Of a stretch of DNA of 64,000 nt, positions 38,291 through 63,985 are shown piece after piece. The DNA is taken from assembly GCA_964036045.1 (NCBI GenBank), contig OZ038378.1:194680001-194744000 (forward strand), given 5' to 3'. A program made the translations under genes and the position numbers. Position 1 is the stretch's first letter, and each line of letters opens with the position of its first letter. The DNA comes from Eutreptiella sp. 'Long Island Sound 2002' (lineage: Eukaryota > Protista > Euglenida). Below the pieces are notes generated by a model. It saw only the letters and a program-made list of their open reading frames with translations. It did no database searches and was not told the DNA's origin.

Positions 38291-40794
38291 CAGTCCATTG
38301 ATCATTATGACAGTTCGAGATGCAGTGTATTTCACTGGAGGCTGCAGAATATTTTCCATCCCTCTTGGGCTTGTTGGCTACTGTGTCTCCTCCATGTGGA
38401 GGTTGTCTGCATTTCTCTCCTCATTCTTAGGGTTGATGATGAAGGCAACAGCAGAGGGGCTGAAGGTCCTGGGCTCAACAGAATGATGTGGAATGGACTT
38501 GGGACATATGTAATGTCTTTGCAATTGCACAGGCTCAAGGGATTCGCATGTGCACATCAAACAGCAAGCAAGCGATTGTGCCAGTCTCTATACATTTGCA
38601 TGGGATTGAGAGCATTTGCGAGGAGAGGGAGATGCAGGCTGGAAATTCAGTGGGTGGTCCGTGGGTGGTATGGTTTTGTCCTTCGGTGGGTTGAGCCCAG
38701 GGAATGCTCTGCAATACGACGGTCAATCTGCCTGTTAGGGCAGGCACAAGCTGCACATGAATGGGTGTTTGAGCCTGAATTAGTCCGCAGCACTACAGCG
38801 AGTAGTGTTTGATGCCAATCTGCCGCTGAACAGTATCAGTGGGGTTTGGAGTCAATGTGAGGGTTCCGAATGAGGCCACTTTGTTTCATCATCTTTGAAT
38901 GGATGTGGTTGCCTGGGAGATTCCAAGGATTTACTGGCTGTCAGTCCTCCACATGTCCAACACGTACCCAACATTGGAATGCTTTCGAGAGCTCAGTGTT
39001 GGATTTCTTATGAGTCCACTAACCATAGCCCAAGTCCGGCATCATACCCACATTGGGCCTGAGGTGTCACCAAAGCTGCGTGCAAAGCAAAAGGCTGCCC
39101 AATAGCTTTCCATGCCATGCCAGCTTAAGGGTCGGGTGTGCGGGGGTGGGAATTTTCGAAGAGGCTCCAACTGCTTGAAATGGCATAGCCCCCCCCCACC
39201 CCCCACCCCCCACCCCACCACCCAATGGAGCATAGGGACACCTGTACCACTCTTACCAGAAATATGTTTCCACGGCGTGGACAGATAATTTCCTCCTAAA
39301 AGCCCGAACCAGTGCGTGCACCTGGAAGCGCCAACCAGCACACATACCCAGCCTCACCCCCCGCTCCCCTTGGAGGGCTGGGACGCCTACCCACTGATGT
39401 GTACATGATGTGGACGCAGTTCCCACACAATCTTGATAACTACCCTGGGCTTACCTTGAGTTTGTCCAGGAGCGCCACGATATCCAGCCAAGAAAATCCC
39501 AGTCAGTGACACTGCCACAGGCCCACACCCCCTCCTCTGTCACCACGGCTGTCGCGCCCCAATGCACTCCAACCCTGAAGCACCAGAAGGAGAATCCGGA
39601 AAAGTTTGCCCGTGCCCATTGCATTGGCGCTCGCGAGCCGTAAGCGACTCCCCGGCAGCACTCCATTGCCCAATTGCCCTTGCTCAGCACAGCACCGCAA
39701 GGGTGGAGATGGGGAACGTGATCCCCATGCCATCACAAGACGCCTCTTTTTCTCAAAACTGAGCCTCACAGTGGGTATCTTTTTTTAACTCAATTCCATT
39801 GTCGTGACGAAGACGCATTTTTACAAATCATTTGGCAGGATTTTTACACAACGGTTTTGGGGTAAGGAGCCTTTAACATGACAAATCAAATGCTAACGCA
39901 CAAGCAGCGGGCCGCAGGCGGAGATGCCCCGGCCGATGCTCGGATGGGGCCATGTCTGCTGGCGGGGGATGGAGATGGAGAGGGAGTGGGCGAGGACGAG
40001 CTGCCCGGTGATGGTGGAAGAGGGACACACGGTCACATTGTGCAGGGCTCAAGGGAGCCCATACTCGGGAGGGAGGAGGGCCCAAGCCTCGTAGGGCAAC
40101 AACGCGCACAACTCGTTCCCCTTCAAACATGACATGCGACGGAGTGGTGGTGTTGGTGGTTGCGGTGCTGTCGGTGTTGCCAATATTTTTTGTCGCGTGG
40201 GGCGGTGCTGGGCCATGTATTCTGTTCTGTTTGTACATCGGACCCTCTGACATTTGGGCCGGAGCTGCAGAGCGTCAGGCGATGTTGCTTTGGCACCTCA
40301 GGGCCCGTTTGGGGGCAGATCTTTCGGAGTGCCAAGACTCGCAGTATGCCAGGCATCAAGCGCCACACACTGGGCACTGGGGCCCAACGGGGGGGAAAGG
40401 TCAGCCGGTTCGGTGGCTGTGGGGCAGGAGTGTGCGCGGACGTACCCCCCCAACCCCCTGGGTCCGTGAGGCGGTGTCGGATCCCTCGCAGCAGCAGTAC
40501 TCGAACAGACCAGGGTCTCGGGCAGGGCCGTAGGCGCAGGGTGCTCGACAGCACTTTCCGTCCGGGAACCTACCACCCGTTTTATATTACGCCGAGAGCT
40601 GCCTCGGTGGCTGGCGCATCACCCGCGGCAGTGCGCCCCCGCCTTGCCGGCACGTGCCATGCGCCGGCAGGTGTGCGCCGACCACCATCCAGTCCACTAT
40701 AAATCTATCCCACCGCTGACTGCTACGCGGACGCAGCAGTGGACTTGACAGCTGCAGTTTGTTTGCTTTTTGTTGCTGTGCAGGAGGCTCTGGT
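38291..40794 (+). repeat. Left arm of a 2,504-bp inverted repeat
   Basis: Reverse complement of 61482-63985. Mirrored ORFs in the track have identical translations and a constant coordinate sum of 102276. Outer end cagtccattgatc, inner end ggctctggt. Confidence 0.97.
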
Positions 40795-43700
40795 TGAAAA
40801 AAATTCAGCTCTGTGAAGTGCGCAATCAAATTTTTATCAAATAGACATGAATCCCATGCAGCTGCAATTGGCTGAATGACAGAATGAATCACGGCACTTT
40901 GACCTGAGCGAAACATGCTGAAATCTGTGGCCCCACGCCTGCTTGAAAACATTTCAGCACTGTGAACCTGGCTGGATCACTCTGCGTTGCAAAGCTCCCA
41001 GAAGTTGATCACTATGGCTGTCAAATGCTGCAGCAAAGCAGGGGCAGCTGGGTGGCACAATGCACTCCAGAAGAAATGAGCAGAAACAACCTGGCTGGAT
41101 GTAGTCCCTTCCTCAAACCCGAGACCTTGGTTCCCCGGAAACATGCAATTGTGCACATGGGCTCTGGCCAACATGGCCAAGTACTCGGCTTTACAAAATG
41201 CAGGCATGACCTACCAGACAATCTCAGTCTGCTCCATAGCAGACTTGGAACATTTTGAGAAATGAAAATCTACATTGAAAACCAAACACATGACACCAAG
41301 GATGGTGCCCATCACATGCCATTGCACACTCAGGAAACTAGGCAAAAAAGGGCAATTTGTGTGCGATTTGGTGAAAAAATCTCCGGGGGGGGGATATTTC
41401 TTCCTTCGAGAGGGGGTAGCCAGGGGGGCCATGTTTCTTCTTTCGAGACGGGGGGGGGGCATTGGCATGGCGGGTCCATTGGCATGGGGGGAGGGGGGGG
41501 GTGGCGTTGTTGTCCTGCACACCTGAATAGCTGTCCTACATCCACCAGAACCATCAAAAACCCATTACCCTGGAAAAAGAAGGTGATGTGGAAATGACCC
41601 GAGGCCTGGTTCAAAATTTTTCAGCACCATATACTTTATGTGGCAGTCAATGAAGCTGACGAGCGTGGCCTGCATTGGATCGCAACATACCACTGGGTCC
41701 AGATGTGGCACTGATCAGGGAAGCATTGTGGAAACCAGGCACACAACAGAGCTGAAAGTGGTGGCCCCAGGCCTGCTTGAAGAAATTCAGCTCTGTGAAG
41801 TGCGCAATCAAATTTTTATCAAATAGACATGAATCCCATGCAGCTGCAATTGGCTGAATGACAGAATGAATCACGGCACTTTGACCTGAGCGAAACATGC
41901 TGAAATCTGTGGCCCCACACCTGCTTGAAAACATTTCAGCACTGTGAACCTGGCTGGATCACTCTGCGTTGCAAAGCTCCCAGAAGTTGATCACTATGGC
42001 GGTCAAATGCTGCAGCAAAGCAGGGGCAGCTGGGTGGCACAATGCACTCCAGAAGAAATGAGCAGAAACAACCTGGCTGGATGTAGTCCCTTCCTCAAAC
42101 CCGAGACCTTGGTTCCCCGGAAACATGCAATTGTGCACATGGGCTCTGGCCAACATGGCCAAGTACTCGGCTTTACAAAATGCAGGCATGACCTACCAGA
42201 CAATCTCAGTCTGCTCCATAGGAGACTTGGAACATTTTGAGAAATGAAAATCTACATTGAAAACCAAACACATGACACCAAGGATGGTGCCCATCACATG
42301 CCATTGCACACTCAGGAAACTAGGCAAAAAAGGGCAATTTGTGTGCGATTTGGTGAAAAAATCTCCGGGGGGGGGGGATGTTTCTTCCTTCGAGAGGGGG
42401 TAGCCAGGGGGGCCATGTTTCTTCTTTCGAGACGGGGGGGGGGGCATTGGCATGGCGGGTCCATTGGCATGGGGGGAGGGGGGGGGTGGCGTTGTTGTCC
42501 TGTACACCTGAATAGCTGTCCTACATCCACCAGAACCATCAAAAACCCATTACCCTGGAAAAAGAAGGTGATGTGGAAATGACCCGAGGCCTGGTTCAAA
42601 ATTTTTCAGCACCATATACTTTATGTGGCAGTCAATGAAGCTGACGAGCGTGGCCTGAATTGGATCGCAACATACCACTGGGTCCAGATGTGGCACTGAT
42701 CAGGGAAGCATTGTGGAAACCAGGCACACAACAGAGCTGAAAGTGGTGGCCCCAGGCCTGCTTGAAAAAATTCAGCTCTGTGAAGTGCGCAATAAAATTT
42801 TTATCAAATAGACGTGAATCCCATGCAACTGCAATTGGCTGAATGACAGAATGAATCACGGCACTTTGACCTGAGCGAAACATGCTGAAATCTGTGGCCC
42901 CACGCCTGCTTGAAAACATTTCAGCATTGTGAACCTGGCTGGATCACTGTGCGTTGCAAAGCTCCCAGAAGTTGATCACTATGGCGGTCAAATGCTGCAG
43001 CAAAGCAGGGGCAGCTGGGTGGCACAATGCACTCCAGAAGAAATGAGCAGAAACAACCTGGCTGGATGTAGTCCCTTCCTCAAACCCGAGACCTTGGTTC
43101 CCCGGAAACATGCAATTGTGCACATGGGCTCTGGCCAACATGGCCAAGTACTCGGCTTTACAAAATGCAGGCATGACCTACCAGACAATCTCAGTCTGCT
43201 CCATAGGAGACTTGGAACATTTTGAGAAATGAAAATCTACATTGAAAACCAAACACATGACACCAAGGATGGTGCCCATCACATGCCATTGCACGCTCAG
43301 GAAACTAGGCAAAAAAGGGCAATTTGTGTGCGATTTGGTGAAAAAATCTCCGGGGGGGGAGATGTTTCTTCCTTCGAGAGGGGGTAGCCAGGGGGGCCAT
43401 ATTTCTTCTTTCGAGACGGGGGGGCGGCATTGGCATGGCGGGTCCATTGGCATGGGGGGAGGGGGGGGGTGGCGTTGTTGTCCTGCACACCTGAATAGCT
43501 GTCCTACATCCACCAGAACCATCAAAAACCCATTACCCTGGAAAAAGAAGGTGATGTGGAAATGACCCGAGGCCTGGTTCAAAATTTTTCAGCACCATAT
43601 ACTTTATGTGGCAGTCAATGAAGCTGACGAGCGTGGCCTGAATTGGATCGCAACATACCACTGGGTCCAGATGTGGCACTGATCAGGGAAGCATTGTGGA

Positions 43701-46700
43701 AACCAGGCACACAACAGAGCTGAAAGTGGTGGCCCCAGGCCTGCTTGAAAAAATTCAGCTCTGTGAAGTGCGCAATAAAATTTTTATCAAATAGACGTGA
43801 ATCCCATGCAACTGCAATTGGCTGAATGACAGAATGAATCACGGCACTTTGACCTGAGCGAAACATGCTGAAATCTGTGGCCCCTCGCCTGCTTGAAAAC
43901 ATTTCAGCATTGTGAACCTGGCTGGATCACTCTGCGTTGCAAAGCTCCCAGAAGTTGATCACTATGGCGGTCAAATGCTGCAGCAAAGCAGGGGCAGCTG
44001 GGTGGCACAATGCACTCCAGAAGAAATGAGCAGAAACAACCTGGCTGGATGTAGTCCCTTCCTCAAACCCGAGACCTTGGTTCCCCGGAAACATGCAATT
44101 GTGCACATGGGCTCTGGCCAACATGGCCAAGTACTCGGCTTTACAAAATGCAGGCATGACCTACCAGACAATCTGAGTCTGCTCCATAGGAGACTTGGAA
44201 CATTTTGAGAAATGAAAATCTACATTGAAAACCAAACACATGACACCAAGGATGGTGCCCATCACATGCCATTGCACACTCAGGAAACTAGGCAAAAAAG
44301 GGCAATTTTGTGCGATTTGGTGAAAAAATCTCGGGAGGGGGGATGTTTCTTCCTTCGAGAGGGGGTAGCCAGGGGGGCCATGTTTCTTCTTTCGAGACGG
44401 GGGGGGGGGCATTGGCATGGCGGGGCCATTGGCATGGGGGGTCCATTGGCATGGGAGGGGGGGGGGCGTTGTTGTCCTGCACACCTGAATAGCTGTCCTA
44501 CATCCACCAGAACCATCAAAAACCCATTACCCTGGAAAAAGAAGGTGATGTGGAAATGACCCGAGGCCTGGTTCAAAATTTTTCAGCACCATATACTTTA
44601 TGTGGCAGTCAATGAAGCTGACGAGCGTGGCCTGCATTGGATCGCAACATACCACTGGGTCCAGATGTGGCACTGATCAGGGAAGCATTGTGGAAACCAG
44701 GCACACAACAGAGCTGAAAGTGGTGGCCCCAGGCCTGCTTGAAAAAATTCAGCTCTGTGAAGTGCGCAATCAAATTTTTATCAAATAGACATGAATCCCA
44801 TGCAACTGCAATTGGCTGAATGACAGAATGAATCACGGCACTTTGACCTGAGCGAAACATGCTGAAATCTGTGGCCCCACGCCTGCTTGAAAACATTTCA
44901 GCACTGTGAACCTGGCTGGATCACTCTGCGTTGCAAAGCTCCCAGAAGTTGATCACTATGGCTGTCAAATGCTGCAGCAAAGCAGGGGCAGCTGGGTGGC
45001 ACAATGCACTCCAGAAGAAATGAGCAGAAACAACCTGGCTGGATGTAGTCCCTTCCTCAAACCCGAGACCTTGGTTCCCCGGAAACATGCAATTGTGCAC
45101 ATGGGCTCTGGCCAACATGGCCAAGTACTCGGCTTTACAAAATGCAGGCATGACCTACCAGACAATCTCAGTCTGCTCCATAGGAGACTTGGAACATTTT
45201 GAGAAATGAAAATCTACATTGAAAACCAAACACATGACACCAAGGATGGTGCCCATCACATGCCATTGCACACTCAGGAAACTAGGCAAAAAAGGGCAAT
45301 CTGTGTGCGATTTTGTGAAAAAATCTCCGGGGGGGGGATGTTTCTTCCTTCGAGAGGGGGTAGCCAGGGGGGCCATGTTTCTTCTTTCGAGACGGGGGGG
45401 GGCATTGGCATGGGGGGTCCATTGGCATGGGGGGAGGGGGGGGGTGGCGTTGTTGTCCTGCACACCTGAATAGCTGTCCTACATCCACCAGAACCATCAA
45501 AAACCCATTACCCTGGAAAAAGAAGGTGATGTGGAAATGACCCGAGGCCTGGTTCAAAATTTTTCAGCACCATATACTTTATGTGGCAGTCAATGAAGCT
45601 GACGAGCGTGGCCTGAATTGGATCGCAACATACCACTGGGTCCAGATGTGGCACTGATCAGGGAAGCATTGTGGAAACCAGGCACACAACAGAGCTGAAA
45701 GTGGTGGCCCCAGGCCTGCTTGAAAAAATTCAGCTCTGTGAAGTGCGCAATAAAATTTTTATCAAATAGACGTGAATCCCATGCAACTGCAATTGGCTGA
45801 ATGACAGAATGAATCACGGCACTTTGACCTGAGCGAAACATGCTGAAATCTGTGGCCCCACGCCTGCTTGAAAACATTTCAGCATTGTGAACCTGGCTGG
45901 ATCACTCTGCGTTGCAAAGCTCCCAGAAGTTGATCACTATGGCGGTCAAATGCTGCAGCAAAGCAGGGGCAGCTGGCTGGCACAATGCACTCCAGAAGAA
46001 ATGAGCAGAAACAACCTGGCTGGATGTAGTCCCTTCCTCAAACCCGAGACCTTGGTTCCCCGGAAACATGCAATTGTGCACATGGGCTCTGGCCAACATG
46101 GCCAAGTACTCGGCTTTACAAAATGCAGGCATGACCTACCAGACAATCTCAGTCTGCTCCATAGGAGACTTGGAACATTTTGAGAAATGAAAATCTACAT
46201 TGAAAACCAAACACATGACACCAAGGATGGTGCCCATCACATGCCATTGCACACTCAGGAAACTAGGCAAAAAAGGGCAATTTTGTGCGATTTGGTGAAA
46301 AAATCTCGGGGGGGGGGGGATTTTTCTTCCTTCGAGAGGGGGTAGCCAGGGGGGCCATGTTTCTTCTTTCGAGACGGGGGGGGGGCATTGGCATGGCGGG
46401 TCCATTGGCATGGGGGGTCCATTGGCATGGGGGGGGGGGGCGTTGTTGTCCTGCACACCTGAACAGCTGTCCTACATCCACCAGAACCATCAAAAACCCA
46501 TTACCCTGGAAAAAGAAGGTGCTGTGGAAATGACCAGAGGCCTGGTTCAAAATTTTTCAGCACCATATACTTTATGTGGCAGTCAATGAAACTGATGAGC
46601 GTGGCCTGAATTGCATCGCAACATACCACTGGGTCCAGATGTGGCACTGATCAGGGAAGCATTGTGGAAACCAGGCACACAACAGAGCTGAAAGTGGTGG

Positions 46701-49500
46701 CCCCAGGCCTGCTTGAAAAAAATTCAGCTCTGTGAAGTGCGCAATAATAATGTTTTCAAATAGACATGAATCCCATGCAACTGCAATTGGCTGAATGACA
46801 GAATGAATCACGGCACTTTGACCTGAGCGAAACATGCTGAAATCTGTGGCCCCACGCCTGCTTGAAAACATTTCAGCACTGTGAACCTGGCTGGATCACT
46901 CTGCGTTGCAAAGCTCCCAGAAGTTGATCACTATGGCTGTCAAATGCTGCAGCAAAGCAGGGGCAGCTGGGTGGCACAATGCACTCCAGAAGAAATGAGC
47001 AGAAACAACCTGGCTGGATGTAGTCCCTTCCTCAAACCCGAGACCTTGGTTCCCCGGAAACATGCAATTGTGCACATGGGCTCTGGCCAACATGGCCAAG
47101 TACTCGGCTTTACAAAATGCAGGCATGACCTACCAGACAATCTCAGTCTGCTCCATAGGAGACTTGGAACATTTTGAGAAATGAAAATCTACATTGAAAA
47201 CCAAACACATGACACCAAGGATGGTGCCCATCACATGCCATTGCACACTCAGGAAACTAGGCAAAAAAGGGCAATTTTGTGCGATTTGGTGAAAAAATCT
47301 CGGGGGGGGGGGGATGTTTCTTCCTTCGAGAGGGGGTAGCCAGGGAGGTCATGTTTCTTCTTTCGAGACGGGGGGGGGGCATTGGCATGGCGGGTCCATT
47401 GGCATGGGGGGTCCATTGGCATGGGGGGGGGGGGGGGCGTTGTTGTCCTGCACACCTGAATAGCTGTCCTACATCCACCAGAACCATCAAAAACCCATTG
47501 CCCTGGAAAAAGAAGGTGATGTGGAAATGACCCGAGGCCTGGTTCAAAATTTTTCAGCACCATATACTTTATGTGGCAGTCAATGAAGCTGACGAGCGTG
47601 GCCTGCATTGGATCGCAACATACCACTGCGTCCAGATGTGGCACTGATCAGGGAAGCATTGTGGAAACCAGGCACACAACAGAGCTGAAAGTGGTGGCCC
47701 CAGGCCTGCTTGAAAAAATTCAGCTCTGTGAAGTGCGCAATAAAATTTTTATCAAATAGACATGAATCCCATGCAACTGCAATTGGCTGAATGACAGAAT
47801 GAATCACGGCACTTTGACCTGAGCGAAACATGCTGAAATCTGTGGCCCCACGCCTGCTTGAAAACATTTCAGCACTGTGAACCTGGCTGGATCACTCTGC
47901 GTTGCAAAGCTCCCAGAAGTTGATCACTATGGCTGTCAAATGCTGCAGCAAAGCAGGGGCAGCTGGGTGGCACAATGCACTCCAGAAGAAATGAGCAGAA
48001 ACAACCTGGCTGGATGTAGTCCCTTCCTCAAACCCGAGACCTTGGTTCCCCGGAAACATGCAATTGTGCACATGGGCTCTGGCCAACATGGCCAAGTACT
48101 CGGCTTTACAAAATGCAGGCATGACCTACCAGACAATCTCAGTCTGCTCCATAGGAGACTTGGAACATTTTGAGAAATGAAAATCTACATTGAAAACCAA
48201 ACACATGACACCAAGGATGGTGCCCATCACATGCCATTGCACACTCAGGAAACTAGGCAAAAAAGGGCAATTTTGTGCGATTTGGTGAAAAAATCTCGGG
48301 GGGGGGGGATGTTTCTTCCTTCGAGAGGGGGTAGCCAGGGGGGCCATGTTTCTTCTTTCGAGACGGGGGGGGGGCATTGGCATGGCGGGTCCATTGGCAT
48401 GGGGGGTCCATTGGCATGGGGGGGGGGGGGCGTTGTTGTCCTGCACACCTGAACAGCTGTCCTACATCCACCAGAACCATCAAAAACCCATTACCCTGGA
48501 AAAAGAAGGTGATGTGGAAATGACCCGAGGCCTGGTTCAAAATTTTTCAGCACCATATACTTTATGTGGCAGTCAATGAAGCTGACGAGCGTGGCCTGAA
48601 TTGGATCGCAACATACCACTGGGTCCAGATGTGGCACTGATCAGGGAAGCATTGTGGAAACCAGGCACACAACAGAGCTGAAAGTGGTGGCCCCAGGCCT
48701 GCTTGAAAAAATTCAGCTCTGTGAAGTGCGCAATAAAATTTTTATCAAATAGACATGAATCCCATGCAACTGCAATTGGCTGAATGACAGAATGAATCAC
48801 GGCACTTTGACCTGAGCGAAACATGCTGAAATCTGTGGCCCCACACCTGCTTGAAAACATTTCAGCACTGTGAACCTGGCTGGATCACTCTGCGTTGCAA
48901 AGCTCCCAGAAGTTGATCACTATGGCTGTCAAATGCTGCAGCAAAGCAGGGGCAGCTGGGTGGCACAATGCACTCCAGAAGAAATGAGCAGAAACAACCT
49001 GGCTGGATGTAGTCCCTTCCTCAAACCCGAGACCTTGGTTCCCCGGAAACATGCAATTGTGCACATGGGCTCTGGCCAACATGGCCAAGTACTCGGCTTT
49101 ACAAAATGCAGGCATGACCTACCAGACAATCTCAGTCTGCTCCATAGGAGACTTAGAACATTTTGAGAAATGAAAATCTACATTGAAAACCAAACACATG
49201 ACACCAAGGATGGTGCCCATCACATGCCATTGCACACTCAGGAAACTAGGCAAAAAAGGGCAATTTGTGTGCGATTTGGTGAAAAAATCTCGGGGGGGGG
49301 GATGTTTCTTCCTTCGAGAGGGGGTAGCCAGGGGGGCCATGTTTCTTCTTTCGAGACGGGGGGGGGGCATTGGCATGGGGGGTTCATTGGCATGGGGGGA
49401 GGGGGGGGGGCGTTGTTGTCCTGCACACCTGAATAGCTGTCCTACATCCACCAGAACCATCAAAAACCCATTACCCTGGAAAAAGAAGGTGATGTGGAAA
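40795..49500 (+). repeat. Tandem array of an ~981-996-bp unit, about 8.8 copies
   Basis: The same ORF-track marker recurs at 40962, 41944, 42929, 43912, 44906, 45887, 46881, 47877, 48870. Units differ by SNPs, poly-G length and 2 vs 3 copies of a cattggcatgg subrepeat. Confidence 0.98.
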
Positions 49501-50508: not shown

Positions 50509-50936
50509 CCATTCAGCGAAAGTGAGCAAAATGTCCTGCCATGAGTACAAAGGATACAAGTGGCAGTACCCCACAACACAGTCACCCACACAACAACACA
50601 ATGAGCCGTAACGAAAAATTTTGGGTTGACCAAGTGACGGTCCCCCAGCCCCCCCCGGGGAACGACAAGGGCTGGGGAACGACAAGGGGGGGGGGGGGCG
50701 GAAGGAAAGGGGGGCAGGGGGGTAGGAGTGAGACATTTGTTCCAGCTACCAGCATGTAGTCCCTTCCTCGATCTTGAGACGTCGATTCCGCTGAGACTTG
50801 ACTGCTGATGACCATTTCATGTGGATTGCCACTGCCCACCCATGTCCTCAGACATTCCACAATGGGGTTCCTCAGTGGACTACAAACGACCTTGTCGCCA
50901 AAGAGTCCACTGAACAGGAAGACATGGCAAAAACAA

Positions 50937-51381: not shown

Positions 51382-52920
51382 CTGCACGACTGGGTGAGCA
51401 GGGCAAGCCCTAGTACCTGGACATTGTGTCTCCAGGGCGGTATTGTGCTTGGCCTGGTCACTCGCTTGCGCCATCGTATGAGCCCCCCCCCTCCCCCCCC
51501 GGCGGGAAGCACTGAAACTGGAAACAATGCCTCCGATTGTCCTGACAAGAGCAGTGTTTACGCGCAGGAAGCAGCGGTGGTATAGCAAAGCATCATTCAG
51601 CTCCTTGCGCACCCGTCGACCTGCTCAAAAAACCACGAACGGCACCCCCCAGTGGAATCAACATCTCGTGGTGGCAGGCATACTACCACAGGAAGAGTAC
51701 AGGGCAGTGCACCCACGTACAGATGCCTGCATGCAAGAAACAGCTGTGCAGGATCTGGGTCCAAATTGCCAAATAGGGGCTGCAGCCTGTGAAGAACTTT
51801 TGTGGACCTCCTCCTTCCCTCTCGCAGACAACCCAAGGTTGGCTGAGCAGAGACCGGGGCCCAAAGACGGAGCTTCCAGTGAAACGTGATCCCCATTTTG
51901 TGCTGAATGAAATGGCAGTTTGTGAGAGGTTTCCTGGTGGTTCAGCAATCATAGCGCCTGATGGTCTCCGAGTGGTCCTGGGATGGGGGGTTCCATAAAG
52001 CCTGATTGGTTACAGTGCAGTACAATTGGTGTCCGGTGCTGTGGGGGCCATGTGGGGGGGGGGGGAGTGCTCCGCAAAGGCGGATTGCTCCCCACGGAGT
52101 ACCTCCCCCAACCCGCCCCAACTGACATGCTACTCTCACCCACAGAAGTGCACCCCACCCCACACCCATGCACGGGCGGCCGAAAGCTTGCCGTGCACGG
52201 CCGTGCCTGCTGAGGGGGCCCTCTCCCCGCCACCCAACCCCAGGCGGGCGACCAATGGGCCAGGTGCATAAACCCTACCCCAAGCCCCTGATCCCTGCAT
52301 TTCATGCACTGCAGGTCCCGGAACGGGTCCTACGCTGCCCCCCTTCCCTCTTCCCCTCTCTTTAGGCCCGCAGGTGAGGGAAGATCGGGGGCAACGGTTT
52401 AAGGCATAGCTCAGGGTTCGGTTCAGGGCCCCCCCGTCCACCAGTTCCCATTGGTACGACATCCAGGCCATTGCCTTTTGGAAACACCACCTTCGGCACA
52501 CACCTACACACACACACAAAGGAAGTAGACAGACATGTCTGGGACATCCGCGAGACCGACCTGTTGAACAAGTTTGAGGGGGTGAGACCTAATTAAGGTT
52601 AGCTAAGCGAAGGTGTGGGTGGAACCTTTGGTACACCCTGTTTAACACAGCCACCCCCCAAGAGCTACTGGATTGCAACCACTCAAAGGCACATAACTTC
52701 AAGCGCGGGAATGAAAACTTGGGGGGGGGGGGATGGAAAATCGACTCTTCTATACAAAAGTGCAGTCTTGTGGGGCTCAAGGTGTCTCTAGGCGCCGCGG
52801 ATATGGAATTCCCTCCTGCATGAGATGTCATTCACAATGCATCAGCCCCCCCCTCCCCTTGGGCTGCTTCGGGACAATGTTCGCCGGGGTATATCCGCTG
52901 GGGGTGCAGCGCCCACTCAA

Positions 52921-53712
52921 TCATGTGTCCCAGTTGTCAAGGCGCTTTCCATCGCGGCTGAAAGCCGGAAGCGTCGCCCCCTCAGGTGCCAGCGCGACCA
53001 CCAGCACCGACGCCGCGCCCTCCGCCGGAGTGCGGCCGGCGGCCGCCCCGCCCATGCGCGTGCTACACCAGCCGGGGCACACGGCCACCGTGGTCACACC
53101 CGCCGCCAGCAGTGCCGGGTCCCCCCTCAGCAGCAGGGTGTAGCGGTTCAGCAAGCACTTGGTGATCTTGTACGCGGCCACGTACGCGCGACCCCTGCGC
53201 TCCGAGACGTCTGAGGAGAGCGCCCGGCCGACCGCCAGCAGCTGCTCGGGCGTCGCGGCGGCCCAGATCTTAGGGCCCAGCGCACGCTCCGGCAGCTCGG
53301 ACCGCGCCCCATAACCGGACGAGACGTTGACGATGCGGCCGCCGGGCGCCAGGTGCGGGCGCAGCGCGTCCACAACGCCAACCGGACCCTCGAAGTTCGC
53401 GGCCAAGTGGGCGGCGTAGTTCGCCTCTGACCAGCCGTCGCGGTACACCGCCGCGTTGTTAATGAGCAGGTCCACGCGCAGGGACACCTCCGCCACGCCC
53501 AATGCGCACGCGACCCGGCCCGGCAGGGTCTGCCGGCTCGCGGGGCAACTCGTGTCCAGGACAACGCTTTTGCAGCCCAGCCTTTGCGCCGCACCTCGGC
53601 CGGCGGCCTCGTCACGACAGGCCAGGACCACGCTCTAGTGGCGGGCGACGAGCGTCCTGGCGGTTTCAAGGCCGATGCCACGGTTGCCGCCCGTCAGAAT
53701 GGCAGAGGGCTT
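52921..53712 (-). pseudogene. Carbonyl-reductase-like short-chain dehydrogenase/reductase (SDR), intronless, one in-frame TAG and no visible ATG
   Basis: AILTGGNRGIGLETARTLVARH-TAG-SVVLACRD, DLLINNAAV, RIVNVSS, YKITK (YxxxK), VCPGWCSTRMGG, TGA at 52921-52923. The TAG lies at 53635-53637. Confidence 0.85.
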
Positions 53713-53722
53713 TGCTCTGTTG

Positions 53723-54982
53723 CTACTGATTATGTTGTGTCACTATCAGCAGGGCAATCATGTTTACAAGGCTTGAGCAGTTCGGATTTCGACTTTTTAA
53801 ATTGGCTAGCCTCAATGTGGGTTTGACAAACCCAGGAGAAAACTCTGCCAGAGGAACAATTCTGTTGAATGCTTTTCCTTTTGGCACCCAGAAAGGCGGC
53901 GGAATACAGAGATCCATGCTCTTCCCCTGTGAGGAAATGACTGTTCCAAACCCATAACTTCCACTTGAAAAATATCCTGAAACGAGGACAGTGCCCAAGG
54001 GAAGGACAAAGGACGCGGTTGCTTGCTCTGTCTGCGGGCTCCTCCAGGACACCTTCTGATCTGTTCTTCCGCAGCAGTGAGGTTGTGATACAGTGACAGT
54101 CCAAGTTGACAAACTGGCACTCACTTGACGCTGAGTGGGTCCAACACAAAGGTAGGATGGCAAGTGTTGCAGATTGCGGTGGATCGGAGGAGGCAATTTT
54201 GTGCTGCCAGGGCACGCATGAGGAATACGAGCCTCAATTGCATATGCAATAAAGTAAGCAATGGCAGCATGTCCAAATGCACTTGGATGGTTTATACGAT
54301 TTGCAAAGTACGACACCCAGCAGCCTCGGGTCAATGACTCACATGCCTCCGATCTGAAAGCTGAATCAACATTGACAGCAAGGTCGACCTTGGAATAATG
54401 GAGAGCACCACTCAAACTCTCCCTCGGGAGGGTGCGATTAATGTTAGGTGGAAGCAGAATATGTACGACAGCAGCAGAGGATGGTAGTTGACGACGCAAT
54501 CCTTCCAAGTACCCATCAATCCAACCTCCATTTGGCTCATATTCCATGAAGACCAAGTCTTCGTCACCTTGAAACCGGGTGCAGTACATGGCGTACTCCA
54601 TGGTAATTCCTCCCATTGATAAGTTGCGGAATATGAGGTTCACAGTTGACGGCAACAGTTGATGAAACCATTCTTCGAGTTGTCCCCTGAAGGAACACTG
54701 ATTGAGGGAAGAGAAACGGCACTGTATCATGGCATCTCCTCCAGCGGTCACTGAGCCACCAACAAAAGTCACGACGAATCGTGTTCTGTTCAAAAAAAGG
54801 AAATCTTGGAAAAGGTCAACAATACGGCACCCCCCAGGCAATACAGCCAGTCTGGCGAGCGTGATAGTGCACCACGAATTATTTTGACATCCGGACGGAA
54901 GCCAACCAGATTGCAGTGGCAACACTCTGCATTCGCCGGGGAAAACAAAGACAAGAAACAAAAGTCTAAGGACAGTAGCCAT
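53723..54982 (-). CDS. Secreted SGNH/GDSL-type hydrolase-like protein, 419 aa, intronless ORF
   Basis: Hydrophobic N-terminus MATVLRLLFLVFVFP; block I FVGGSVTAG, block II NLSMGG, block III DLVFMEYEPN, block V HPSAFGHAAIA; longest clean ORF in the window. Confidence 0.82.
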   Translation of the reverse strand: MATVLRLLFLVFVFPGECRVLPLQSGWLPSGCQNNSWCTITLARLAVLPGGCRIVDLFQDFLFLNRTRFVVTFVGGSVTAGGDAMIQCRFSSLNQCSFRGQLEEWFHQLLPSTVNLIFRNLSMGGITMEYAMYCTRFQGDEDLVFMEYEPNGGWIDGYLEGLRRQLPSSAAVVHILLPPNINRTLPRESLSGALHYSKVDLAVNVDSAFRSEACESLTRGCWVSYFANRINHPSAFGHAAIAYFIAYAIEARIPHACPGSTKLPPPIHRNLQHLPSYLCVGPTQRQVSASLSTWTVTVSQPHCCGRTDQKVSWRSPQTEQATASFVLPLGTVLVSGYFSSGSYGFGTVISSQGKSMDLCIPPPFWVPKGKAFNRIVPLAEFSPGFVKPTLRLANLKSRNPNCSSLVNMIALLIVTQHNQ

Positions 54983-56067
54983 CTGAGAAACGTGAATACA
55001 GGATATTTCTTGAATTGGGCGGCTGAGCAGGAAGCGATTACTGCATTGTCCTATGATGCACTCTATTTCAGAATGGACAGGGCTCAGTTCAAAGCCACTG
55101 AATAATGCACAAGTAGTCTGGAGTAAGTGAGGAGCCTGTTATGTCTCGAGTACCGTCGGTGTTGGAATTGCCCTGTCAGATCTTTCCATGCTCCGGATTT
55201 TCACATAACCTCTCTTACTCACCAGCTTAAAACTGAAGGCAAACCGATGCAAGCCCGAAGTCTCACTACTATGCGCTAAGGATTCTGGTGGCACAAGAAT
55301 CCAGACCGCCAACTCATCTGTTTCTCTGGCAGCTGGTGATCACCTAACCAAGTGCTTCCGGATAATTGGAATGTCTTGACTAGAACCAAGCTGTCTGGTT
55401 TGTAGGCTCCATCTGGGATATATTACCCGCTGAAGCAGTGGCTCATTTATAATTTCCCAGATGCCTCCAAAAGCCGACAACAACTCTAGAACTTGGGTCA
55501 CAGATTCCAAGGAAAAAAGTTATGTGTTCGGCCCCCCACCCCGAGGGATTTTGGATCTTCTGCTTGGACAACTTCCACAAACTCCAATACTACCCACCCG
55601 CATGGCAACCAAAAACTACCCAAATCCAAGGCCACAACCTACAAACATCTGAAAATTTTGCCACCAAAACTCCAAAACAATAACCCAAAGAAAGTGATGA
55701 ACCAACAATCAATTAGGTCCGCCTCGACATTTTCAAGTCTTTAGAAGTGCTTGACTAGGAAGAGGTTTATTATTTCAATAAAATAAGCAAGCCAGACCTT
55801 GCAGATGCCCAATCCATCTCTTCCCAAAATCGATTTTTGGGGTTTGTGTGTCACATATATCCTAACCCCCCAATTATACCCCCGCGCCGCGAAAACCCCC
55901 TCAGACCCCCCCCCCTTTTAAACTTTGCGGTTGAATCATGTTATCCAATCTCCGAGACCCCCCCCCCCTGGTCACTGTCCCCACCAGGTTTGTTGCGGTG
56001 CATTATTTCACCACTGCAACCGTCGGCCTATGGTCTGCCACAGTGCCGGAAACACGACAGCCATAAG

Positions 56068-59000
56068 GGGGGCGCACCGTGCGCTGTGCGCGCGCTGTGC
56101 GAAAAGTAGGGTATTTTGGGGCACGTGGCCGTACTAGAAACCCATACTTCCTGATACTAGGGGCATAATTGTTGTTTGAAAACGGGCATTTTGATGCTTC
56201 TTTCGCATTGGAGATATGGTATATTTGGATTTTCACTCAGTTTCACCCATTTTCACCCATTCTTGTTTTTGGTGACTCAACTTGTGCAATTTGCCCAAGG
56301 TCATTGAGGGCTGGCCAAAGCCCAAAGTGATGAAAGAACTACGTGGCTTTCTCGGGTTGTGCAACTTCTACTCACAATATGTGCCGAAGTATGCCGAGAT
56401 GGCCAAACCCCTCATGGAGTTGCTGCAAACGGAGCATCTCAAAACGGATGTGCAGCAAAGAACCTCTATGATGAAAGTACACCGGAACGAGGCAGCCGAG
56501 GCGGCCTTTGTACTGTTGTGCTTGGGCGAATCAAGGGTGGGTGGATTCTAGGGTGGTCATGGGAAAGTAGCATAACTATTGGGCGCTGTGTGCGCGCTGT
56601 GCCCGCGCTGTGCCCGCGCTGTGCAGAAACACCCCAAAGGTCAAGGCTGCCACACCGTCACTGTCTATCTATGGCAATTTCCCAATTGGAATCTGGTGCA
56701 CGCGGTCAGTGCGCAGTAGAATCGTGTAGAAGTAGAAGCGCCCCTTTCTCCCCATCCAAATTCCACGTGGGGTGCACGGTTCATGCACGGATCAAGCAAC
56801 ACCCCCAATATGTGTTTCTAGTGCGGCCAGACACCCAAATAGTCCAACTGCTCTTAGGGTCCCCCTTAGCAACTGTTCTGGCAGGGTAGCTGTCATGCAG
56901 CGGGGGAGGGGGGGGGGGGGGGCTACATATTGCTCGCGCAAGCTTTTGGTGAAATCCCCTCTATTCACCCCGCTGAAAGCTTTGTCCTTCATGTAATCTG
57001 GTGTTGGCAGTATTCTTTACCCTTCCCCTATCTCCTTTTTTTGCCTGCATGTGCCTGTTTTGGTTGCATTGGCACCCCAGTGAAAAGGGTCAACATTGCA
57101 GGGAAAATTTTCACCTTTTCCACTTTTTCCGGGAAGGGGAGGGGGCGAGGGAGTGAATGGGGACCTTTTTCCCCTCTCCATGGTAAGCAGGGCATACTGT
57201 ACAGAAAAGAATCAAAATGCTATCCTCGCTCTGCTCTCCATTCAAACCCAGCTTGCTGCTGGCCTAGTGCTAGTGGGATACAGTGCAATGCTGTGATGCC
57301 AGAGCGTTAAGCGACTGGTCTGAGTTAATACCCTCGCGGTACAAAGGTTGAATTGAGCCTTTGCCTCCCTCCTCACTTGTTTCTCCTTCAAATCTGAACC
57401 CCAACATTGCATGACCATTGTGTGCCAGTAATTTCAGGTAGATCAATGTGTTCATATTGTTGCAAATCTATGTTTACACCACAACTGTTGTGCAAATTTA
57501 TGGGGTCAATCGGGCATTTGATTAGAAGGTTAGGGGCAGGCATTCCCTTTGAGGTGTGAGGGAATTGGCGGTGAATGGTAACCTTCTTACCAATGTTACG
57601 GCATACCATTACAATGGCTGCACAGGGAGCAGGCTGCGTGAAACGCAAAGAGACCTCAGACCTGAATTCCAAATCAGTCAAGAATACCACTTGTGCTTTC
57701 TTAGAATCCTTGTGCCAGAGAAGCATACCAAAAGCAAGATCACCAGCTGACTGTGATGCTTACGTGTGCATTCTGAGATGTAAGTGCTGTGCACCTTGGC
57801 AACCTCCACCACACATGTGCTTTCACATGTCACTCTGAACTGTCATGAATGGGCCCGCCACCGACGCATTTGCCTGTCGACTAAGACTGCTCAACCATAA
57901 GGTTGGGATTGAGGATGGCTAACCCAGATATCTACAAACTTTGCCCAAACAGGGTCAGTATCAACCCCAAACGGACCGCAGGACTGCAATGCAATGCAAT
58001 GCAACACAATGCAATGCTCCATCTATTAACACTCTAAGCTAAAAAAACGGCAGCAGAAGATGAAGACTAACACAAAAACCTGAAAAAGTTTGTGCGAAAA
58101 GCTGTAGAGGACCATGATAGTCTATTCCAGATGGGGTGGGGGTGATAATACACAATGTACACTGATGACCTCGCAAAGAGGTGCCACCACCGCCTCCAAA
58201 AGGACCCCACACACAAATGCACATTCCAGTCACTTTTGAACACTTTTCGGGTTTTCACAATGTACGGAGTGCCATGCCAATGCTGCAGACAGGAAAAGCA
58301 TCAGGGCCATCCCACAGCAAAGCAGCCCGGGACGTGTTTGCACCAGCAGGTCCAAAGCGGCATCTCGGCAACCATGTTGCTTGCAGCTGTACCAGAAACC
58401 CCAAAAATGTGCATGCTGCATGGTGGTGCATGCCTAATGGGAATCCGGATAGTGGGTAAGCATTCGGGGCTGGTCAAGAGGGAAATTTGCCATTCCAATA
58501 CACCGCACACGAAACTGCTGGAGCTGACCACCAAGTACAAGAGGATCAGGCTTCCATTATTGGGAGACCCACTACCCCTGGTGTCGCTTTCACTACCATT
58601 CCTACCCCCCCTTCAATACACCAACAGTGCCCCCCCCCCCCCCCCCCCTGAATACACCAACAGTGCCTTCTACGGAGCCCCCACCTGGATAGCTGGGAGG
58701 CACAGAGCAAAAGCAGCGCCTTCTGCGCATTTTCCCCAGGAAAGGAATCCACTCTGAGATGGTCTATACCTCCCCGTCCGGGGCTATCTTGGAAGCGGGG
58801 GGGGGGGGGGGCTACAAAGAAATTTTCATTGATGGCGAAATGACAAACAGGAGCAAATGCAGAGCAGAAGCAAACATTGAGGCATTCCACTCCGGGGGGT
58901 GTTGCCATGAAGGCTGAGTAGGTGCTGAGTAAATTGGTACTGTGGCGTGTCTGCACATCAGGGGGGTTGGGGAGAGGGGGTTTAAGGGGGGACAGGGTGT

Positions 59001-61445
59001 CACTGCATAGCTGCACTACCCACCAGTGGCGATGGTTGTCTAGGCCTTGCGTGGTGGCTCACCAAACGCTGCAACTAAATTCAACAGGTACATCCAAAAT
59101 GCCCAAGTTCATCACAACTTCCAATGTCAATTGCAAGCAACCATAGACCATAGACCAACCCCAAGGGAGCAAACTCACGATGAGGAATTGCAATTTCTGT
59201 ACAGTCTTGAACATCACAGGACGCGCATCTTGTACCATTGTTACCTTTTTTCAGTTCTGCCACCTGTCGCACCAACACTCATTGTAGGCTCAGGGCCTTG
59301 ACGTAGCCGCACTATCCATGCCCAGAGGAGGTTGGTAGTAGGCTTGGCTGAGACTGGATTCCTGAGCCCACTCCCACCCCTTCCATTTCCCCTTCCATTA
59401 CCTTGTACCCCATCCCGTTGTCTAAGCCAATGCCAGACACCAAATTCATGCAGTCCTCAAGATACTTCGGCCTAGACTAGGGCGGGGTTTGCTGCGCAGG
59501 GAACAACGAATGGTCCTTGAGGGGGGGCTGCCCATTGCCCTTTGATGAGGTCCCTCAAACGCTCTCAGCTGCTTTGGTTGTAAACCAGGCAGAATCCATG
59601 CTATCGATTCAGAGAAGACCAAATAAGGTACCAACTTCATACAGTCTGTCGTGGTTGTTGGGCTATGGGAGCTTTCATGCACAGCGCAAAGTTTTCAGGG
59701 GAACTACTACCAGAATTTAAAATCTTGAGGCTAGTACATAAACCGACTGCATCTTGGACTTGTGCGCGGGGACTGTAAGGGTGGGCAGATTAGGGACCAT
59801 CAGTTTGAAGAAGGGTCCAGATTGCTGTTTGTCCAGACTGCGGTCAGTAATAAGAAGGGAGTTGCTATTACAGTAGACAAGGTGCTCCAGGGAAAGGGTC
59901 ACTCATAATGTGCATGGTGCATTGAATGCTGATGCAAACCCCAACGCTCCACGAATAGAGACTCTTTAGGGGTAACCTGTTCCCGGGGGGTGCCATCAAG
60001 GCAAGTAAGTGTGCCAGTTGGTAGGTGTACACACTGGTTTGAGGCTTTTTAGGAGGAAATTGTCTGCGTTGCTTGTCCCAACCCACCAGGGAAGGGTGTT
60101 TCTGGTCGGTGAGAGCGGAACAGTGGTCCCTCTGCATACAAATGCTTCCCGCACCGGAGCCGGCAATGCTTCACACAAAGTCTTTTCCAAGACAGTCTTT
60201 GGAGGGTGCTCACCACCACTGAGTGGTGGTTGGGGTATGCAAACGCATGGTCTGCACCACAAAATAAAGGAAAATACATAGCACTGCCGGACGCATCCTG
60301 GAAAATCACACACAAATCCGGTGCAAATCCCTTGCAAATTTGGATCAAACACCAAACAATGCATGAAACATTCCGCACTCTGAGCTCGACATGAGGCGGT
60401 CTCGACGGGGATGGAACTGGCTGGCCCCACAAATCCAGCCGTTTACCCTAGGTAAAGGTGGGGAACTTCCTTCCCTCTCCCCAACATTGCCGCCCACAAT
60501 ACCCATAGGACTGGCAAGAAGTGTCAGTGTTGCTGAAAAGACCCAACAGAGCCTGCATTGCCCCCCATTGCTGCCATTACCCCTTGTAAACCTGATGCAG
60601 TTAGATGCATTGACAAAAGGTCCGACCGTATTGTGATCCTCCAACATCCAGCATCACTCTGTCAGCGCAGGAAGTGTATGACGGTTCTGAGAGCACTGGG
60701 CCTGGGTAAGAGACGTATTTCTGGTGCACCCCTGGCCGTGTCCCAGTCGATGTTTTGCAGTCACATCAGGCGGCGTGCCCTGAACCGAGCCAGCCGGTGC
60801 CGCGGATCCGCACCCAAATTCAGCTCCTGCTGTCGTCTTACTGCTGTGGTGTGGTGCACAGGCACCATGACAACCACCGTTGGCTACCCTACAGCTGCGT
60901 GGCCTTCGGCTTCCGTCCACAGCCTTCAAGTAAGGCCTGCGGTCAGCATCCCACTGCTGTCATTGTGCCAATCCTGTGCTGGAACAAGGAGCGAATTCGG
61001 AGAGGCAGGGGGACAAAACGGGAGGTAGCAACCGCAGAGGCAGGTCCAGAGGGGCGACAAACCCTGCGGCCACAGCAAATGGCAGCCTGGAGGCCGCACG
61101 ACGGCACGCGGGATTCCGTTTGGCTTGCTGGGGGCGTTTCTGCACAGCGTGCACACAGCGCGGGCACAGTGCCCAAAAGTAAGTCAGTGTTCCCGTGACC
61201 ACCCTGAAAACCCCCCACCACCCAGGGAGCTACGCCCACAGGGCAAAAACAGCAGATTGAGACAGCAATCTGGCATTTTCAGTGTGAAATATGGTTTGTT
61301 TTAACTCATTATCTGAGTTTTTGCGCTCATTAAGATCCTGTGTATCGGAACACAGTTTTTACTGCGGTCACCTTGGCCATCGTGGAAAACCAGTCCAAAG
61401 CAGCCCACGTTCCGCACAGCGCGCGCGGAGGGCACAGTGCGCCCT
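56068..61445. mobile_element. Diverged inverted repeat pair (about 56068-56655 and 61080-61445), possible old TIR element
   Basis: Both arms share in order gggcgcacYgtgc..gcgcgcgctgtgcg, agggtggtcaYgggaa...tttgggcRctgtg, gcgctgtgcagaaac and ggctgcca. Confidence 0.55.
56282..56520 (+). mobile_element. Ty3/Gypsy LTR-retrotransposon pol fragment (RT thumb/connection)
   Basis: IEGWPKPKVMKELRGFLGLCNFYSQYVPKYAEMAKPLMELL...EAAEAAF matches the WPxPxxxxxLRxFLGLxNFY..YAxxAxPL pattern; no other pol domains or LTRs nearby. Confidence 0.87.
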
Positions 61446-61481
61446 CGTTATTCTGCACGGTGTTGTTTATCGTCGGTGAGC

Positions 61482-63985
61482 ACCAGAGCCTCCTGCACAG
61501 CAACAAAAAGCAAACAAACTGCAGCTGTCAAGTCCACTGCTGCGTCCGCGTAGCAGTCAGCGGTGGGATAGATTTATAGTGGACTGGATGGTGGTCGGCG
61601 CACACCTGCCGGCGCATGGCACGTGCCGGCAAGGCGGGGGCGCACTGCCGCGGGTGATGCGCCAGCCACCGAGGCAGCTCTCGGCGTAATATAAAACGGG
61701 TGGTAGGTTCCCGGACGGAAAGTGCTGTCGAGCACCCTGCGCCTACGGCCCTGCCCGAGACCCTGGTCTGTTCGAGTACTGCTGCTGCGAGGGATCCGAC
61801 ACCGCCTCACGGACCCAGGGGGTTGGGGGGGTACGTCCGCGCACACTCCTGCCCCACAGCCACCGAACCGGCTGACCTTTCCCCCCCGTTGGGCCCCAGT
61901 GCCCAGTGTGTGGCGCTTGATGCCTGGCATACTGCGAGTCTTGGCACTCCGAAAGATCTGCCCCCAAACGGGCCCTGAGGTGCCAAAGCAACATCGCCTG
62001 ACGCTCTGCAGCTCCGGCCCAAATGTCAGAGGGTCCGATGTACAAACAGAACAGAATACATGGCCCAGCACCGCCCCACGCGACAAAAAATATTGGCAAC
62101 ACCGACAGCACCGCAACCACCAACACCACCACTCCGTCGCATGTCATGTTTGAAGGGGAACGAGTTGTGCGCGTTGTTGCCCTACGAGGCTTGGGCCCTC
62201 CTCCCTCCCGAGTATGGGCTCCCTTGAGCCCTGCACAATGTGACCGTGTGTCCCTCTTCCACCATCACCGGGCAGCTCGTCCTCGCCCACTCCCTCTCCA
62301 TCTCCATCCCCCGCCAGCAGACATGGCCCCATCCGAGCATCGGCCGGGGCATCTCCGCCTGCGGCCCGCTGCTTGTGCGTTAGCATTTGATTTGTCATGT
62401 TAAAGGCTCCTTACCCCAAAACCGTTGTGTAAAAATCCTGCCAAATGATTTGTAAAAATGCGTCTTCGTCACGACAATGGAATTGAGTTAAAAAAAGATA
62501 CCCACTGTGAGGCTCAGTTTTGAGAAAAAGAGGCGTCTTGTGATGGCATGGGGATCACGTTCCCCATCTCCACCCTTGCGGTGCTGTGCTGAGCAAGGGC
62601 AATTGGGCAATGGAGTGCTGCCGGGGAGTCGCTTACGGCTCGCGAGCGCCAATGCAATGGGCACGGGCAAACTTTTCCGGATTCTCCTTCTGGTGCTTCA
62701 GGGTTGGAGTGCATTGGGGCGCGACAGCCGTGGTGACAGAGGAGGGGGTGTGGGCCTGTGGCAGTGTCACTGACTGGGATTTTCTTGGCTGGATATCGTG
62801 GCGCTCCTGGACAAACTCAAGGTAAGCCCAGGGTAGTTATCAAGATTGTGTGGGAACTGCGTCCACATCATGTACACATCAGTGGGTAGGCGTCCCAGCC
62901 CTCCAAGGGGAGCGGGGGGTGAGGCTGGGTATGTGTGCTGGTTGGCGCTTCCAGGTGCACGCACTGGTTCGGGCTTTTAGGAGGAAATTATCTGTCCACG
63001 CCGTGGAAACATATTTCTGGTAAGAGTGGTACAGGTGTCCCTATGCTCCATTGGGTGGTGGGGTGGGGGGTGGGGGGTGGGGGGGGGCTATGCCATTTCA
63101 AGCAGTTGGAGCCTCTTCGAAAATTCCCACCCCCGCACACCCGACCCTTAAGCTGGCATGGCATGGAAAGCTATTGGGCAGCCTTTTGCTTTGCACGCAG
63201 CTTTGGTGACACCTCAGGCCCAATGTGGGTATGATGCCGGACTTGGGCTATGGTTAGTGGACTCATAAGAAATCCAACACTGAGCTCTCGAAAGCATTCC
63301 AATGTTGGGTACGTGTTGGACATGTGGAGGACTGACAGCCAGTAAATCCTTGGAATCTCCCAGGCAACCACATCCATTCAAAGATGATGAAACAAAGTGG
63401 CCTCATTCGGAACCCTCACATTGACTCCAAACCCCACTGATACTGTTCAGCGGCAGATTGGCATCAAACACTACTCGCTGTAGTGCTGCGGACTAATTCA
63501 GGCTCAAACACCCATTCATGTGCAGCTTGTGCCTGCCCTAACAGGCAGATTGACCGTCGTATTGCAGAGCATTCCCTGGGCTCAACCCACCGAAGGACAA
63601 AACCATACCACCCACGGACCACCCACTGAATTTCCAGCCTGCATCTCCCTCTCCTCGCAAATGCTCTCAATCCCATGCAAATGTATAGAGACTGGCACAA
63701 TCGCTTGCTTGCTGTTTGATGTGCACATGCGAATCCCTTGAGCCTGTGCAATTGCAAAGACATTACATATGTCCCAAGTCCATTCCACATCATTCTGTTG
63801 AGCCCAGGACCTTCAGCCCCTCTGCTGTTGCCTTCATCATCAACCCTAAGAATGAGGAGAGAAATGCAGACAACCTCCACATGGAGGAGACACAGTAGCC
63901 AACAAGCCCAAGAGGGATGGAAAATATTCTGCAGCCTCCAGTGAAATACACTGCATCTCGAACTGTCATAATGATCAATGGACTG
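61482..63985 (-). repeat. Right arm of the 2,504-bp inverted repeat
   Basis: Mirror of 38291-40794; similarity stops at 63985 (gactg|gacaaaacattatta). Confidence 0.97.

Follow-up and report, generated by a model that had tools for sequence, protein, structure and literature searches.

Two identical 2.5-kb inverted arms around a repeat-rich segment of the Eutreptiella genome, and their probable origin

How do two copies of a 2.5-kb sequence, without a single difference between them, come to lie in opposite orientation some 20 kb apart on one molecule? The question is raised by a 64,000-nucleotide (nt) stretch from the euglenid Eutreptiella sp. 'Long Island Sound 2002' (assembly GCA_964036045.1, contig OZ038378.1, positions 194,680,001 to 194,744,000 of the forward strand), all of which was analysed here and is called the window below. 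The two copies, which we call arms, enclose a satellite array, an intronless open reading frame (ORF) resembling esterases of the SGNH/GDSL type, the relic of a short-chain dehydrogenase/reductase (SDR) gene and several relics of transposable elements (TEs). An earlier note on this DNA offered two accounts of the 25.7-kb segment that the arms delimit, namely (a) a giant fold-back or cargo-carrying element and (b) a very recent inverted segmental duplication. We favour the second account, given the complete identity of the arms, the lack of a target-site duplication (TSD) and the low copy number on record. With a probability of roughly 0.6, the arms are a recent inverted low-copy repeat that arose from a single break-repair event and not by transposition.

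Identity, ends and copy number of the arms

Comparison of the window with itself shows that positions 38291-40794 and 61482-63985 are reverse complements, identical at 2504 of 2504 nt, and that 20,687 nt of spacer separate them. Paired coordinates add up to 102276 at either end, in full agreement with the earlier note's description of arms that match without an indel. An inverted segmental duplication consists of two stretches of at least 1 kb, at high identity and in opposite orientation on one molecule, and this is what the window contains. The pair is a known kind of structure, real and beyond chance; for a perfect repeat of 2.5 kb, a chance match is not an issue. The identity ends sharply. 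The 15 nt beyond position 63985 (GACAAAACATTATTA) differ from the reverse complement of the left flank, so the right arm terminates within the window and is not clipped by the window's edge.

Neither around the whole segment nor around either arm is there a TSD. The outer flanks (...CGCGAGCG on the left, GACAAAAC... on the right) share nothing, as the earlier note had seen. The arm has no terminal inverted repeats (TIRs), no TG..CA ends of the long terminal repeat (LTR) type, no poly-A and no Helitron-type ends, and it contains no internal repeats or sub-repeats. Elsewhere in the window there is no further copy of the arm or of its terminal ~22-mers when up to three mismatches are allowed, and a metagenome scan with the outer terminus of the arm gave no match. 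The ORFs of the arm encode no Pfam domain, and the arm has no Rfam or tRNA match. Its similarity to the adjoining satellite is limited to ~10 nt at the junction and is no better than that of shuffled controls; on this ground, the arm was rejected as a degenerate satellite unit.

Two further features of the arm deserve mention. A 286-aa ORF (37952-38812) crosses the outer junction of the left arm, J1, and was considered as a host gene spanning that junction. It has a non-coding look, no Pfam match and no relatives, and was set aside. The inner ~230 nt of the arm (40560-40794, mirrored at 61482-61716) contain a TATAAA-like motif (ccactataaatc) directed into the interior. If this motif were a promoter, there would be inward transcription from both arms.

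Copy number was gauged from called ORFs in a protein collection, used as a proxy for a genome search. The arm ORF (40129-40533, mirrored at 61743-62147) forms a one-sequence cluster with no cluster mates at 90% and occurs on two contigs only, and the only relative of the J1-crossing ORF is that ORF itself. Judged by called ORFs, the arm does not look like a dispersed repeat. The SGNH-like ORF has versions of 96-100% identity on contigs of 582,323, 746,098 and 2,882,031 bp in the European Nucleotide Archive (ENA) and on a short JGI contig. Copies of the SDR sequence occur at 94% on one or more 746-kb contigs, with an 80% fragment on a 4.14-Mb contig, so that the SGNH/SDR pair, with paralogues at 94-98%, belongs to a segment of which several duplicates exist. 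None of the other SGNH/SDR copies is recorded together with the arm ORF; among called ORFs, therefore, the arm is not a companion of the would-be cargo.

These results bear directly on the possibility that the segment is a non-autonomous giant fold-back or cargo transposon, mobilised in trans, whose long terminal inverted repeats are the arms. Like fold-back (FB-type) and giant cargo transposons, the segment has long terminal inverted arms, here perfect, around an interior of unrelated genes and repeats, among them intronless genes, and the SGNH/SDR pair is multi-copy, as cargo might be. Unlike such transposons, it has no TSD, its arms are without the arrays of sub-repeats that characterise fold-back elements, and it carries no mobility gene. 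A Pfam domain scan of ORFs of at least 100 aa within and between the arms found no transposase, recombinase, integrase, polymerase or capsid domain, which bears out the earlier note's remark that no transposase, polymerase, integrase or capsid gene is recognisable. No relatives of the SGNH-like protein were found in a scan of viral contigs, and a giant-virus or virophage origin of the interior was dropped for that reason. With two arm copies on record and the other copies of the supposed cargo not recorded with the arm ORF, we regard a giant transposon, and with it the first account in the earlier note, as very improbable.

The same observations weigh on a second account by transposition, in which one 2.5-kb low-copy sequence, mobile or retro-copied, inserted twice, independently and recently, in opposite orientation, and the segment between the insertions is coincidental. 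Two young copies of one element would have identical ends and zero divergence, as the arms do. Against this, neither copy has a TSD or any of the element-type ends sought, no further copies are on record, and insertion of both within 20 kb of each other, genome-wide, would be an unlikely coincidence. We give such a pair of insertions little credence, hardly more than the giant transposon.

Assembly across the two arms

Perfect identity between two parts of an assembly invites the suspicion that one of them is not real. Exact look-ups of ORFs show that the gap-free window corresponds to three ENA contigs, of 86,581, 39,533 and 582,323 bp (Table 1). The window contains no N characters and therefore comes from a version of the assembly that is more contiguous than the three-contig ENA one or has had its gaps closed. 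In the ENA assembly, which is of the same organism, the sequence breaks between the left-arm and right-arm contigs at some point in 46,996-52,921, within the array or shortly beyond it. An assembly or scaffolding artefact could thus take two forms. One arm might be unreal at its locus, or the arm-bearing contigs might have been misjoined across the satellite, in which case both arms would be real but the 25.7-kb segment that they delimit would not exist in this form. Perfect identity, homopolymers included, would also result if one set of reads had been used twice, and assemblies are known to suffer from false duplications in the neighbourhood of gaps or of faulty gap fills (PMC9516828).

One feature near the break calls for attention in this respect. 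Positions 49085-49796 form a 712-bp block, of which 412 bp are satellite unit and the other 300 bp unique sequence from beyond the array. A second copy of this block, which differs at one position (49627, A/G), follows directly at 49797-50508. This duplication, absent from the earlier note's description, interrupts the ~990-bp period of the array. The boundary between its copies (49,796/49,797) reads ...GTCAAGTTCCA on the left and AGTACTCGG... on the right. The odds are roughly even that it is a very recent tandem duplication or the untrimmed overlap of two contig ends. An overlap may be involved because a 39,533-bp contig ending at 49,796 would start at 10,264, within the constraints set by the ORF look-ups; no discontinuity is visible at the predicted boundary near 10,264. 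If the block is an overlap, the spacer shortens by only 712 bp, to 19,975 nt. Such an overlap would include the 300 bp of unique DNA, which supports both the order and the orientation of the contig join.

The arms can be placed within the ENA contigs by arithmetic, which assumes collinearity and takes the 39,533-bp contig as the second holder of the arm ORF. If so, this contig would start between 8,153 and 14,099 and end between 46,996 and 53,631, spanning the left arm and at least 6 kb of the satellite, and the 582,323-bp contig would continue beyond the right arm for over 500 kb. Each of the four arm junctions would then be internal to a contig, and each arm would have its own, different unique flanks on either side. 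Arms that lie inside separate contigs with unique flanks make a fold-back chimera unlikely, and a chimera of that kind is a spacer-less palindrome at the end of a contig, unlike the structure seen here. The contig data also suggest that the interior has the same orientation in the ENA assembly as in the window. At the first contig boundary, the His-box of a USP (~5,985) stands on one side and a USP7 ICP0-binding domain (16,158) on the other, both on one strand. This USP7-like gene crosses the boundary in the right order and strand, so the contig order is biological, and the view of the window as an arbitrary concatenation of contigs was rejected. Taken with the placement of the arms, we consider an artefact unlikely.

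A single break-repair event as the probable origin

The arms show 0 differences, whereas the satellite units differ by 1-2% and the paralogues by 2-6%. At 0 differences, the arms are younger than the array units, the paralogues and every other duplicate in the region. Their sharp ends without a TSD are fitted best by a single break-repair event, and from these features we infer the mechanism and the age of the duplication. The arms would be two real copies of one 2.5-kb low-copy, apparently non-coding stretch of host DNA, inverted ~20 kb apart. A long staggered break may have occurred at one end of a segment that became inverted, and the overhang would have been filled in on both fragments. 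The outcome would be an inverted segment with the breakpoint sequence on both sides, in opposite orientations. Of the junctions, 38290/38291 and 61481/61482 would be ancestral, and 40794/40795 and 63985/63986 would be new. An equivalent alternative would be inverted duplication by templated (replicative) copying, in which both junctions of one arm would be ancestral. The perfect identity of the arms would then reflect their youth, possibly sustained by gene conversion from arm to arm, and the interior, with its array, miniature inverted-repeat transposable element (MITE), SGNH-like gene, dead SDR and relics, would be ordinary repeat-rich host DNA and not cargo.

Similar structures are documented in Drosophila, where inverted duplications of non-repetitive sequence were found at the breakpoints of 17 of 29 fixed inversions and staggered breaks were invoked to explain them (Ranz et al. 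2007, PMC1885836). In 12 of the duplication-bearing inversions, only one breakpoint's sequence is duplicated (PMC1885836). There, as here, a segment is flanked by inverted duplicated non-repetitive DNA without a TSD or transposon. The Drosophila duplications are known from comparison between species, are old (~88% identity) and reach ~1.9 kb (PMC1885836); in Eutreptiella, by contrast, the arms are 2.5 kb long and 100% identical, the segment is ~20 kb, and the inversion is shown by no outgroup.

Several points count against a break-repair origin. At 2.5 kb, the arms stand at the upper edge of what could be expected from the Drosophila maximum of ~1.9 kb (PMC1885836). The copy number rests on ORFs called in the protein collection, and the position of the arms inside contigs is arithmetic, with the 39,533-bp contig assumed to be the second that holds the arm ORF. 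The link from arm to arm crosses the 9-kb satellite array and the suspicious 712-bp duplication, where the ENA assembly breaks. Lastly, ~10-30 nt separate the right arm, on its inner side, from a degraded TIR-bearing element (Table 1), a proximity that could suggest a transposon-mediated rearrangement.

If the last point were decisive, alternative or aberrant transposition of the TIR element, whose end lies at ~61,451-61,470, would have produced the adjacent inverted duplication. In maize, alternative transposition reportedly generates both inversions and inverted duplications. The element, with TIRs that retain only 76-87% similarity, is old, whereas the arms are very young. It has no recognisable transposase, its end does not coincide exactly with the breakpoint, and such proximity could easily arise by chance in a TE-rich region. 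We therefore hold this origin to be very improbable, on a par with the giant transposon. A continuation of the 56063/61451 TIR into the arm, which would make the junction J3 ancestral, was also considered and found unconvincing, the alignment being gap-ridden beyond ~15 nt.

Contents and surroundings of the segment, and its possible inversion

Table 1. Features of the window, with the ENA contig on which each ORF was found
Feature	Position	Strand	Remarks
ORF	7464-8153		On the 86,581-bp ENA contig
ORF	15416-16141		On the 39,533-bp ENA contig
ORF	16158-16943		On the 39,533-bp ENA contig
ORF	17610-18392		On the 39,533-bp ENA contig
ORF	33911-34378		On the 39,533-bp ENA contig
ORF crossing J1	37952-38812		On the 39,533-bp ENA contig
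Left arm	38291-40794	+	2504 nt; outer junction J1 crossed by ORF 37952-38812
Arm ORF	40129-40533		Recorded on two contigs; the longer has 582,323 bp
Tandem array of non-coding ~990-bp satellite	40795-49500	+	8.8 units; adjoins the left arm at its inner end
712-bp tandem duplication	49085-50508	+	Two copies, one mismatch
MITE-like element	50955-51367		28-nt TIRs, 86% complementary; internal poly-G sub-repeats
SDR relic	52921-53739	-	adh_short (Pfam) and Rossmann motif TGGNRGIG; on the 582,323-bp ENA contig
419-aa intronless ORF, divergent, two-domain SGNH/GDSL-type esterase-like	53723-54982	-	SGNH domain and C-terminal beta-sandwich; on the 582,323-bp ENA contig
Degraded TIR-bearing element(s)	56063-61451		Two inverted-repeat pairs
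Retroelement pol relic, short	56276-56548	+	LRGFLGLCNFY...PL motif
ORF	58155-58757		On the 582,323-bp ENA contig
Right arm	61482-63985	-	Left arm in exact reverse complement; 15 nt of unrelated sequence separate it from the window end

The satellite array has nine unit starts, from 40798 to 48706, with units of 981-996 bp and pairwise identities of 98.0-99.3%. The final unit is truncated at ~49,500, which gives the 8.8 copies of ~990 bp that the earlier note had counted. Rfam and tRNA scans of the whole window, satellite included, found no match, and the array was accordingly rejected as an array of RNA genes. A metagenome scan with a conserved 24-mer of the satellite gave no match either.

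The MITE and TE relics that the earlier note had placed in the interior are present as a MITE-like element, a pol relic and degraded TIR pairs. The pol relic is recognised by a motif that we take to be the linker between the reverse transcriptase and RNase H of LTR retroelements, a linker that Pfam does not cover. The two inverted-repeat pairs of the TIR-bearing element(s) are 79% alike (56063-56119/61395-61451) and 76-87% alike (56536-56635/61131-61219), and both carry GCGCTGTGC sub-repeats.

The 419-aa ORF is a real gene, uninterrupted and conserved. By itself it has no Pfam match, and its homologues comprise one full-length protein at 43% identity and three weak ones. Weak distant relatives pass the Pfam threshold for Lipase_GDSL_2, and the serine of block I (GGS(76)VTAG), the asparagine of block III (E..N151) and the histidine of block V (H232-P-..-G-H) align with these relatives. 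An AlphaFold model of moderate confidence (predicted local distance difference test score, pLDDT, 67; predicted template modelling score, pTM, 0.72) resembles the two-domain acetyl-mannan esterase 6HFZ, with template modelling (TM) scores of 0.65-0.73 over ~396 aligned columns. Remote homology and predicted fold thus support the earlier note's assignment to the SGNH hydrolases, of which the protein would be a divergent member. The position of the catalytic aspartate, three residues before the block V histidine, is occupied by arginine in the ORF and its close paralogues (NRINHP), whereas all four of the more distant relatives keep the aspartate. Given this arginine, the SGNH-like protein is possibly inactive, and its predicted esterase activity may be altered or lost.

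The earlier note had spoken of intronless enzyme genes in the plural. This holds for the SGNH-like ORF; the SDR frame is broken. An in-frame TAG (53637-53635) separates adh_short from the TGGNRGIG motif and no ATG lies upstream, so that the SDR, judged by its sequence, is a pseudogene-like relic and not an intact enzyme gene. The trebouxiophyte [Myrmecia] bisecta provides its closest named relative, at 38% identity. The relic shares its strand with the SGNH-like ORF and has a few bases in common with it, the SDR frame running over the 3' end of the SGNH-like ORF, an arrangement that resembles a bacterial operon. The 2-kb bins that hold the two show a strong GC contrast (~48% versus ~62%), and the substitutions between copies of the pair look unconstrained.

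The window as a whole has ~55% GC, many poly-G/C tracts and alga-like homologues, and is not human DNA. The USP7-like gene is a multi-exon gene on the + strand that extends from ~5,985 to ~16,943, with the His-box at its start and a ubiquitin-like (UBL)/ICP0-binding region at 14.7-16.9 kb; its exons were inspected singly, by reference or short motif. Some 8.7 kb separate the His-box from the UBL/ICP0 region, with room for little coding sequence in that span, and proline-rich repeat copies lie in the gap (11197-11302/11965-12071, and 12122-12219, which recurs at 30447-30545). The gene probably has large, TE-filled introns. Between it and the left arm there is a cluster of 22-32-bp minisatellites of the TGTGCTGTGC type (32130-32941), which forms a local imperfect palindrome with arms ~80% alike, and a pair of neighbouring microsatellites, (TGG)n with about 20 repeats and (CAA)n with about 30 (35816-36037). 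G/C homopolymer runs of 13-19 nt are unusually dense in the window (10147-10160, 50686-51067, 56903-56923, 58629-58648 and others). Runs of this kind make consensus calling from long reads difficult, and contig breaks can fall at them.

Do the arms also act on the DNA between them? Inverted repeats recombine, and 2.5 kb of perfect inverted homology is an expected substrate for flipping the interior. Sex-chromosome palindromes, whose gene-bearing arms of tens of kb to Mb undergo arm-to-arm gene conversion around a relatively short spacer, resemble this locus in having inverted arms at or near 100% identity around a unique spacer. In contrast to those palindromes, the arms here are short, contain no genes and enclose a spacer eight times their own length. 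Another parallel is human Xq28, where 11.3-kb inverted repeats around FLNA-EMD mediate a recurrent inversion (10.1101/2020.04.20.051185). Those near-identical arms also enclose a gene-bearing spacer of tens of kb, and they recombine, flip the spacer and keep identity high (10.1101/2020.04.20.051185). Both orientations of FLNA-EMD are documented in populations and even in somatic cells, whereas at the Eutreptiella locus one is on record, and the arms have a quarter to a fifth of the length.

From what is generally known of recombination between inverted repeats, flip-flop of the interior is plausible. That the arms work as a recombination switch, with the ~20-kb interior present in both orientations within the population or culture, is a bolder claim, which we judge to be highly improbable, more so than any of the accounts weighed above. 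Were it true, flipping would re-couple the SGNH-like gene or the satellite to promoters in the arms or flanks, and the segment would be an invertible cassette in a eukaryotic nuclear genome and not a passive duplication.

At present the pair adds a further case to the known young inverted low-copy repeats, and it serves chiefly to alert assembly curation, for which the 712-bp duplication and the copy number of the satellite are points to note. For the biology of Eutreptiella, the locus is a candidate site of structural polymorphism. If both orientations of the interior occur, it would offer a small, tractable case for the rate of recombination between short perfect inverted repeats. If a sister strain had the uninverted state with a single arm, the arms would represent an unusually fresh case of a staggered break, caught before any divergence.

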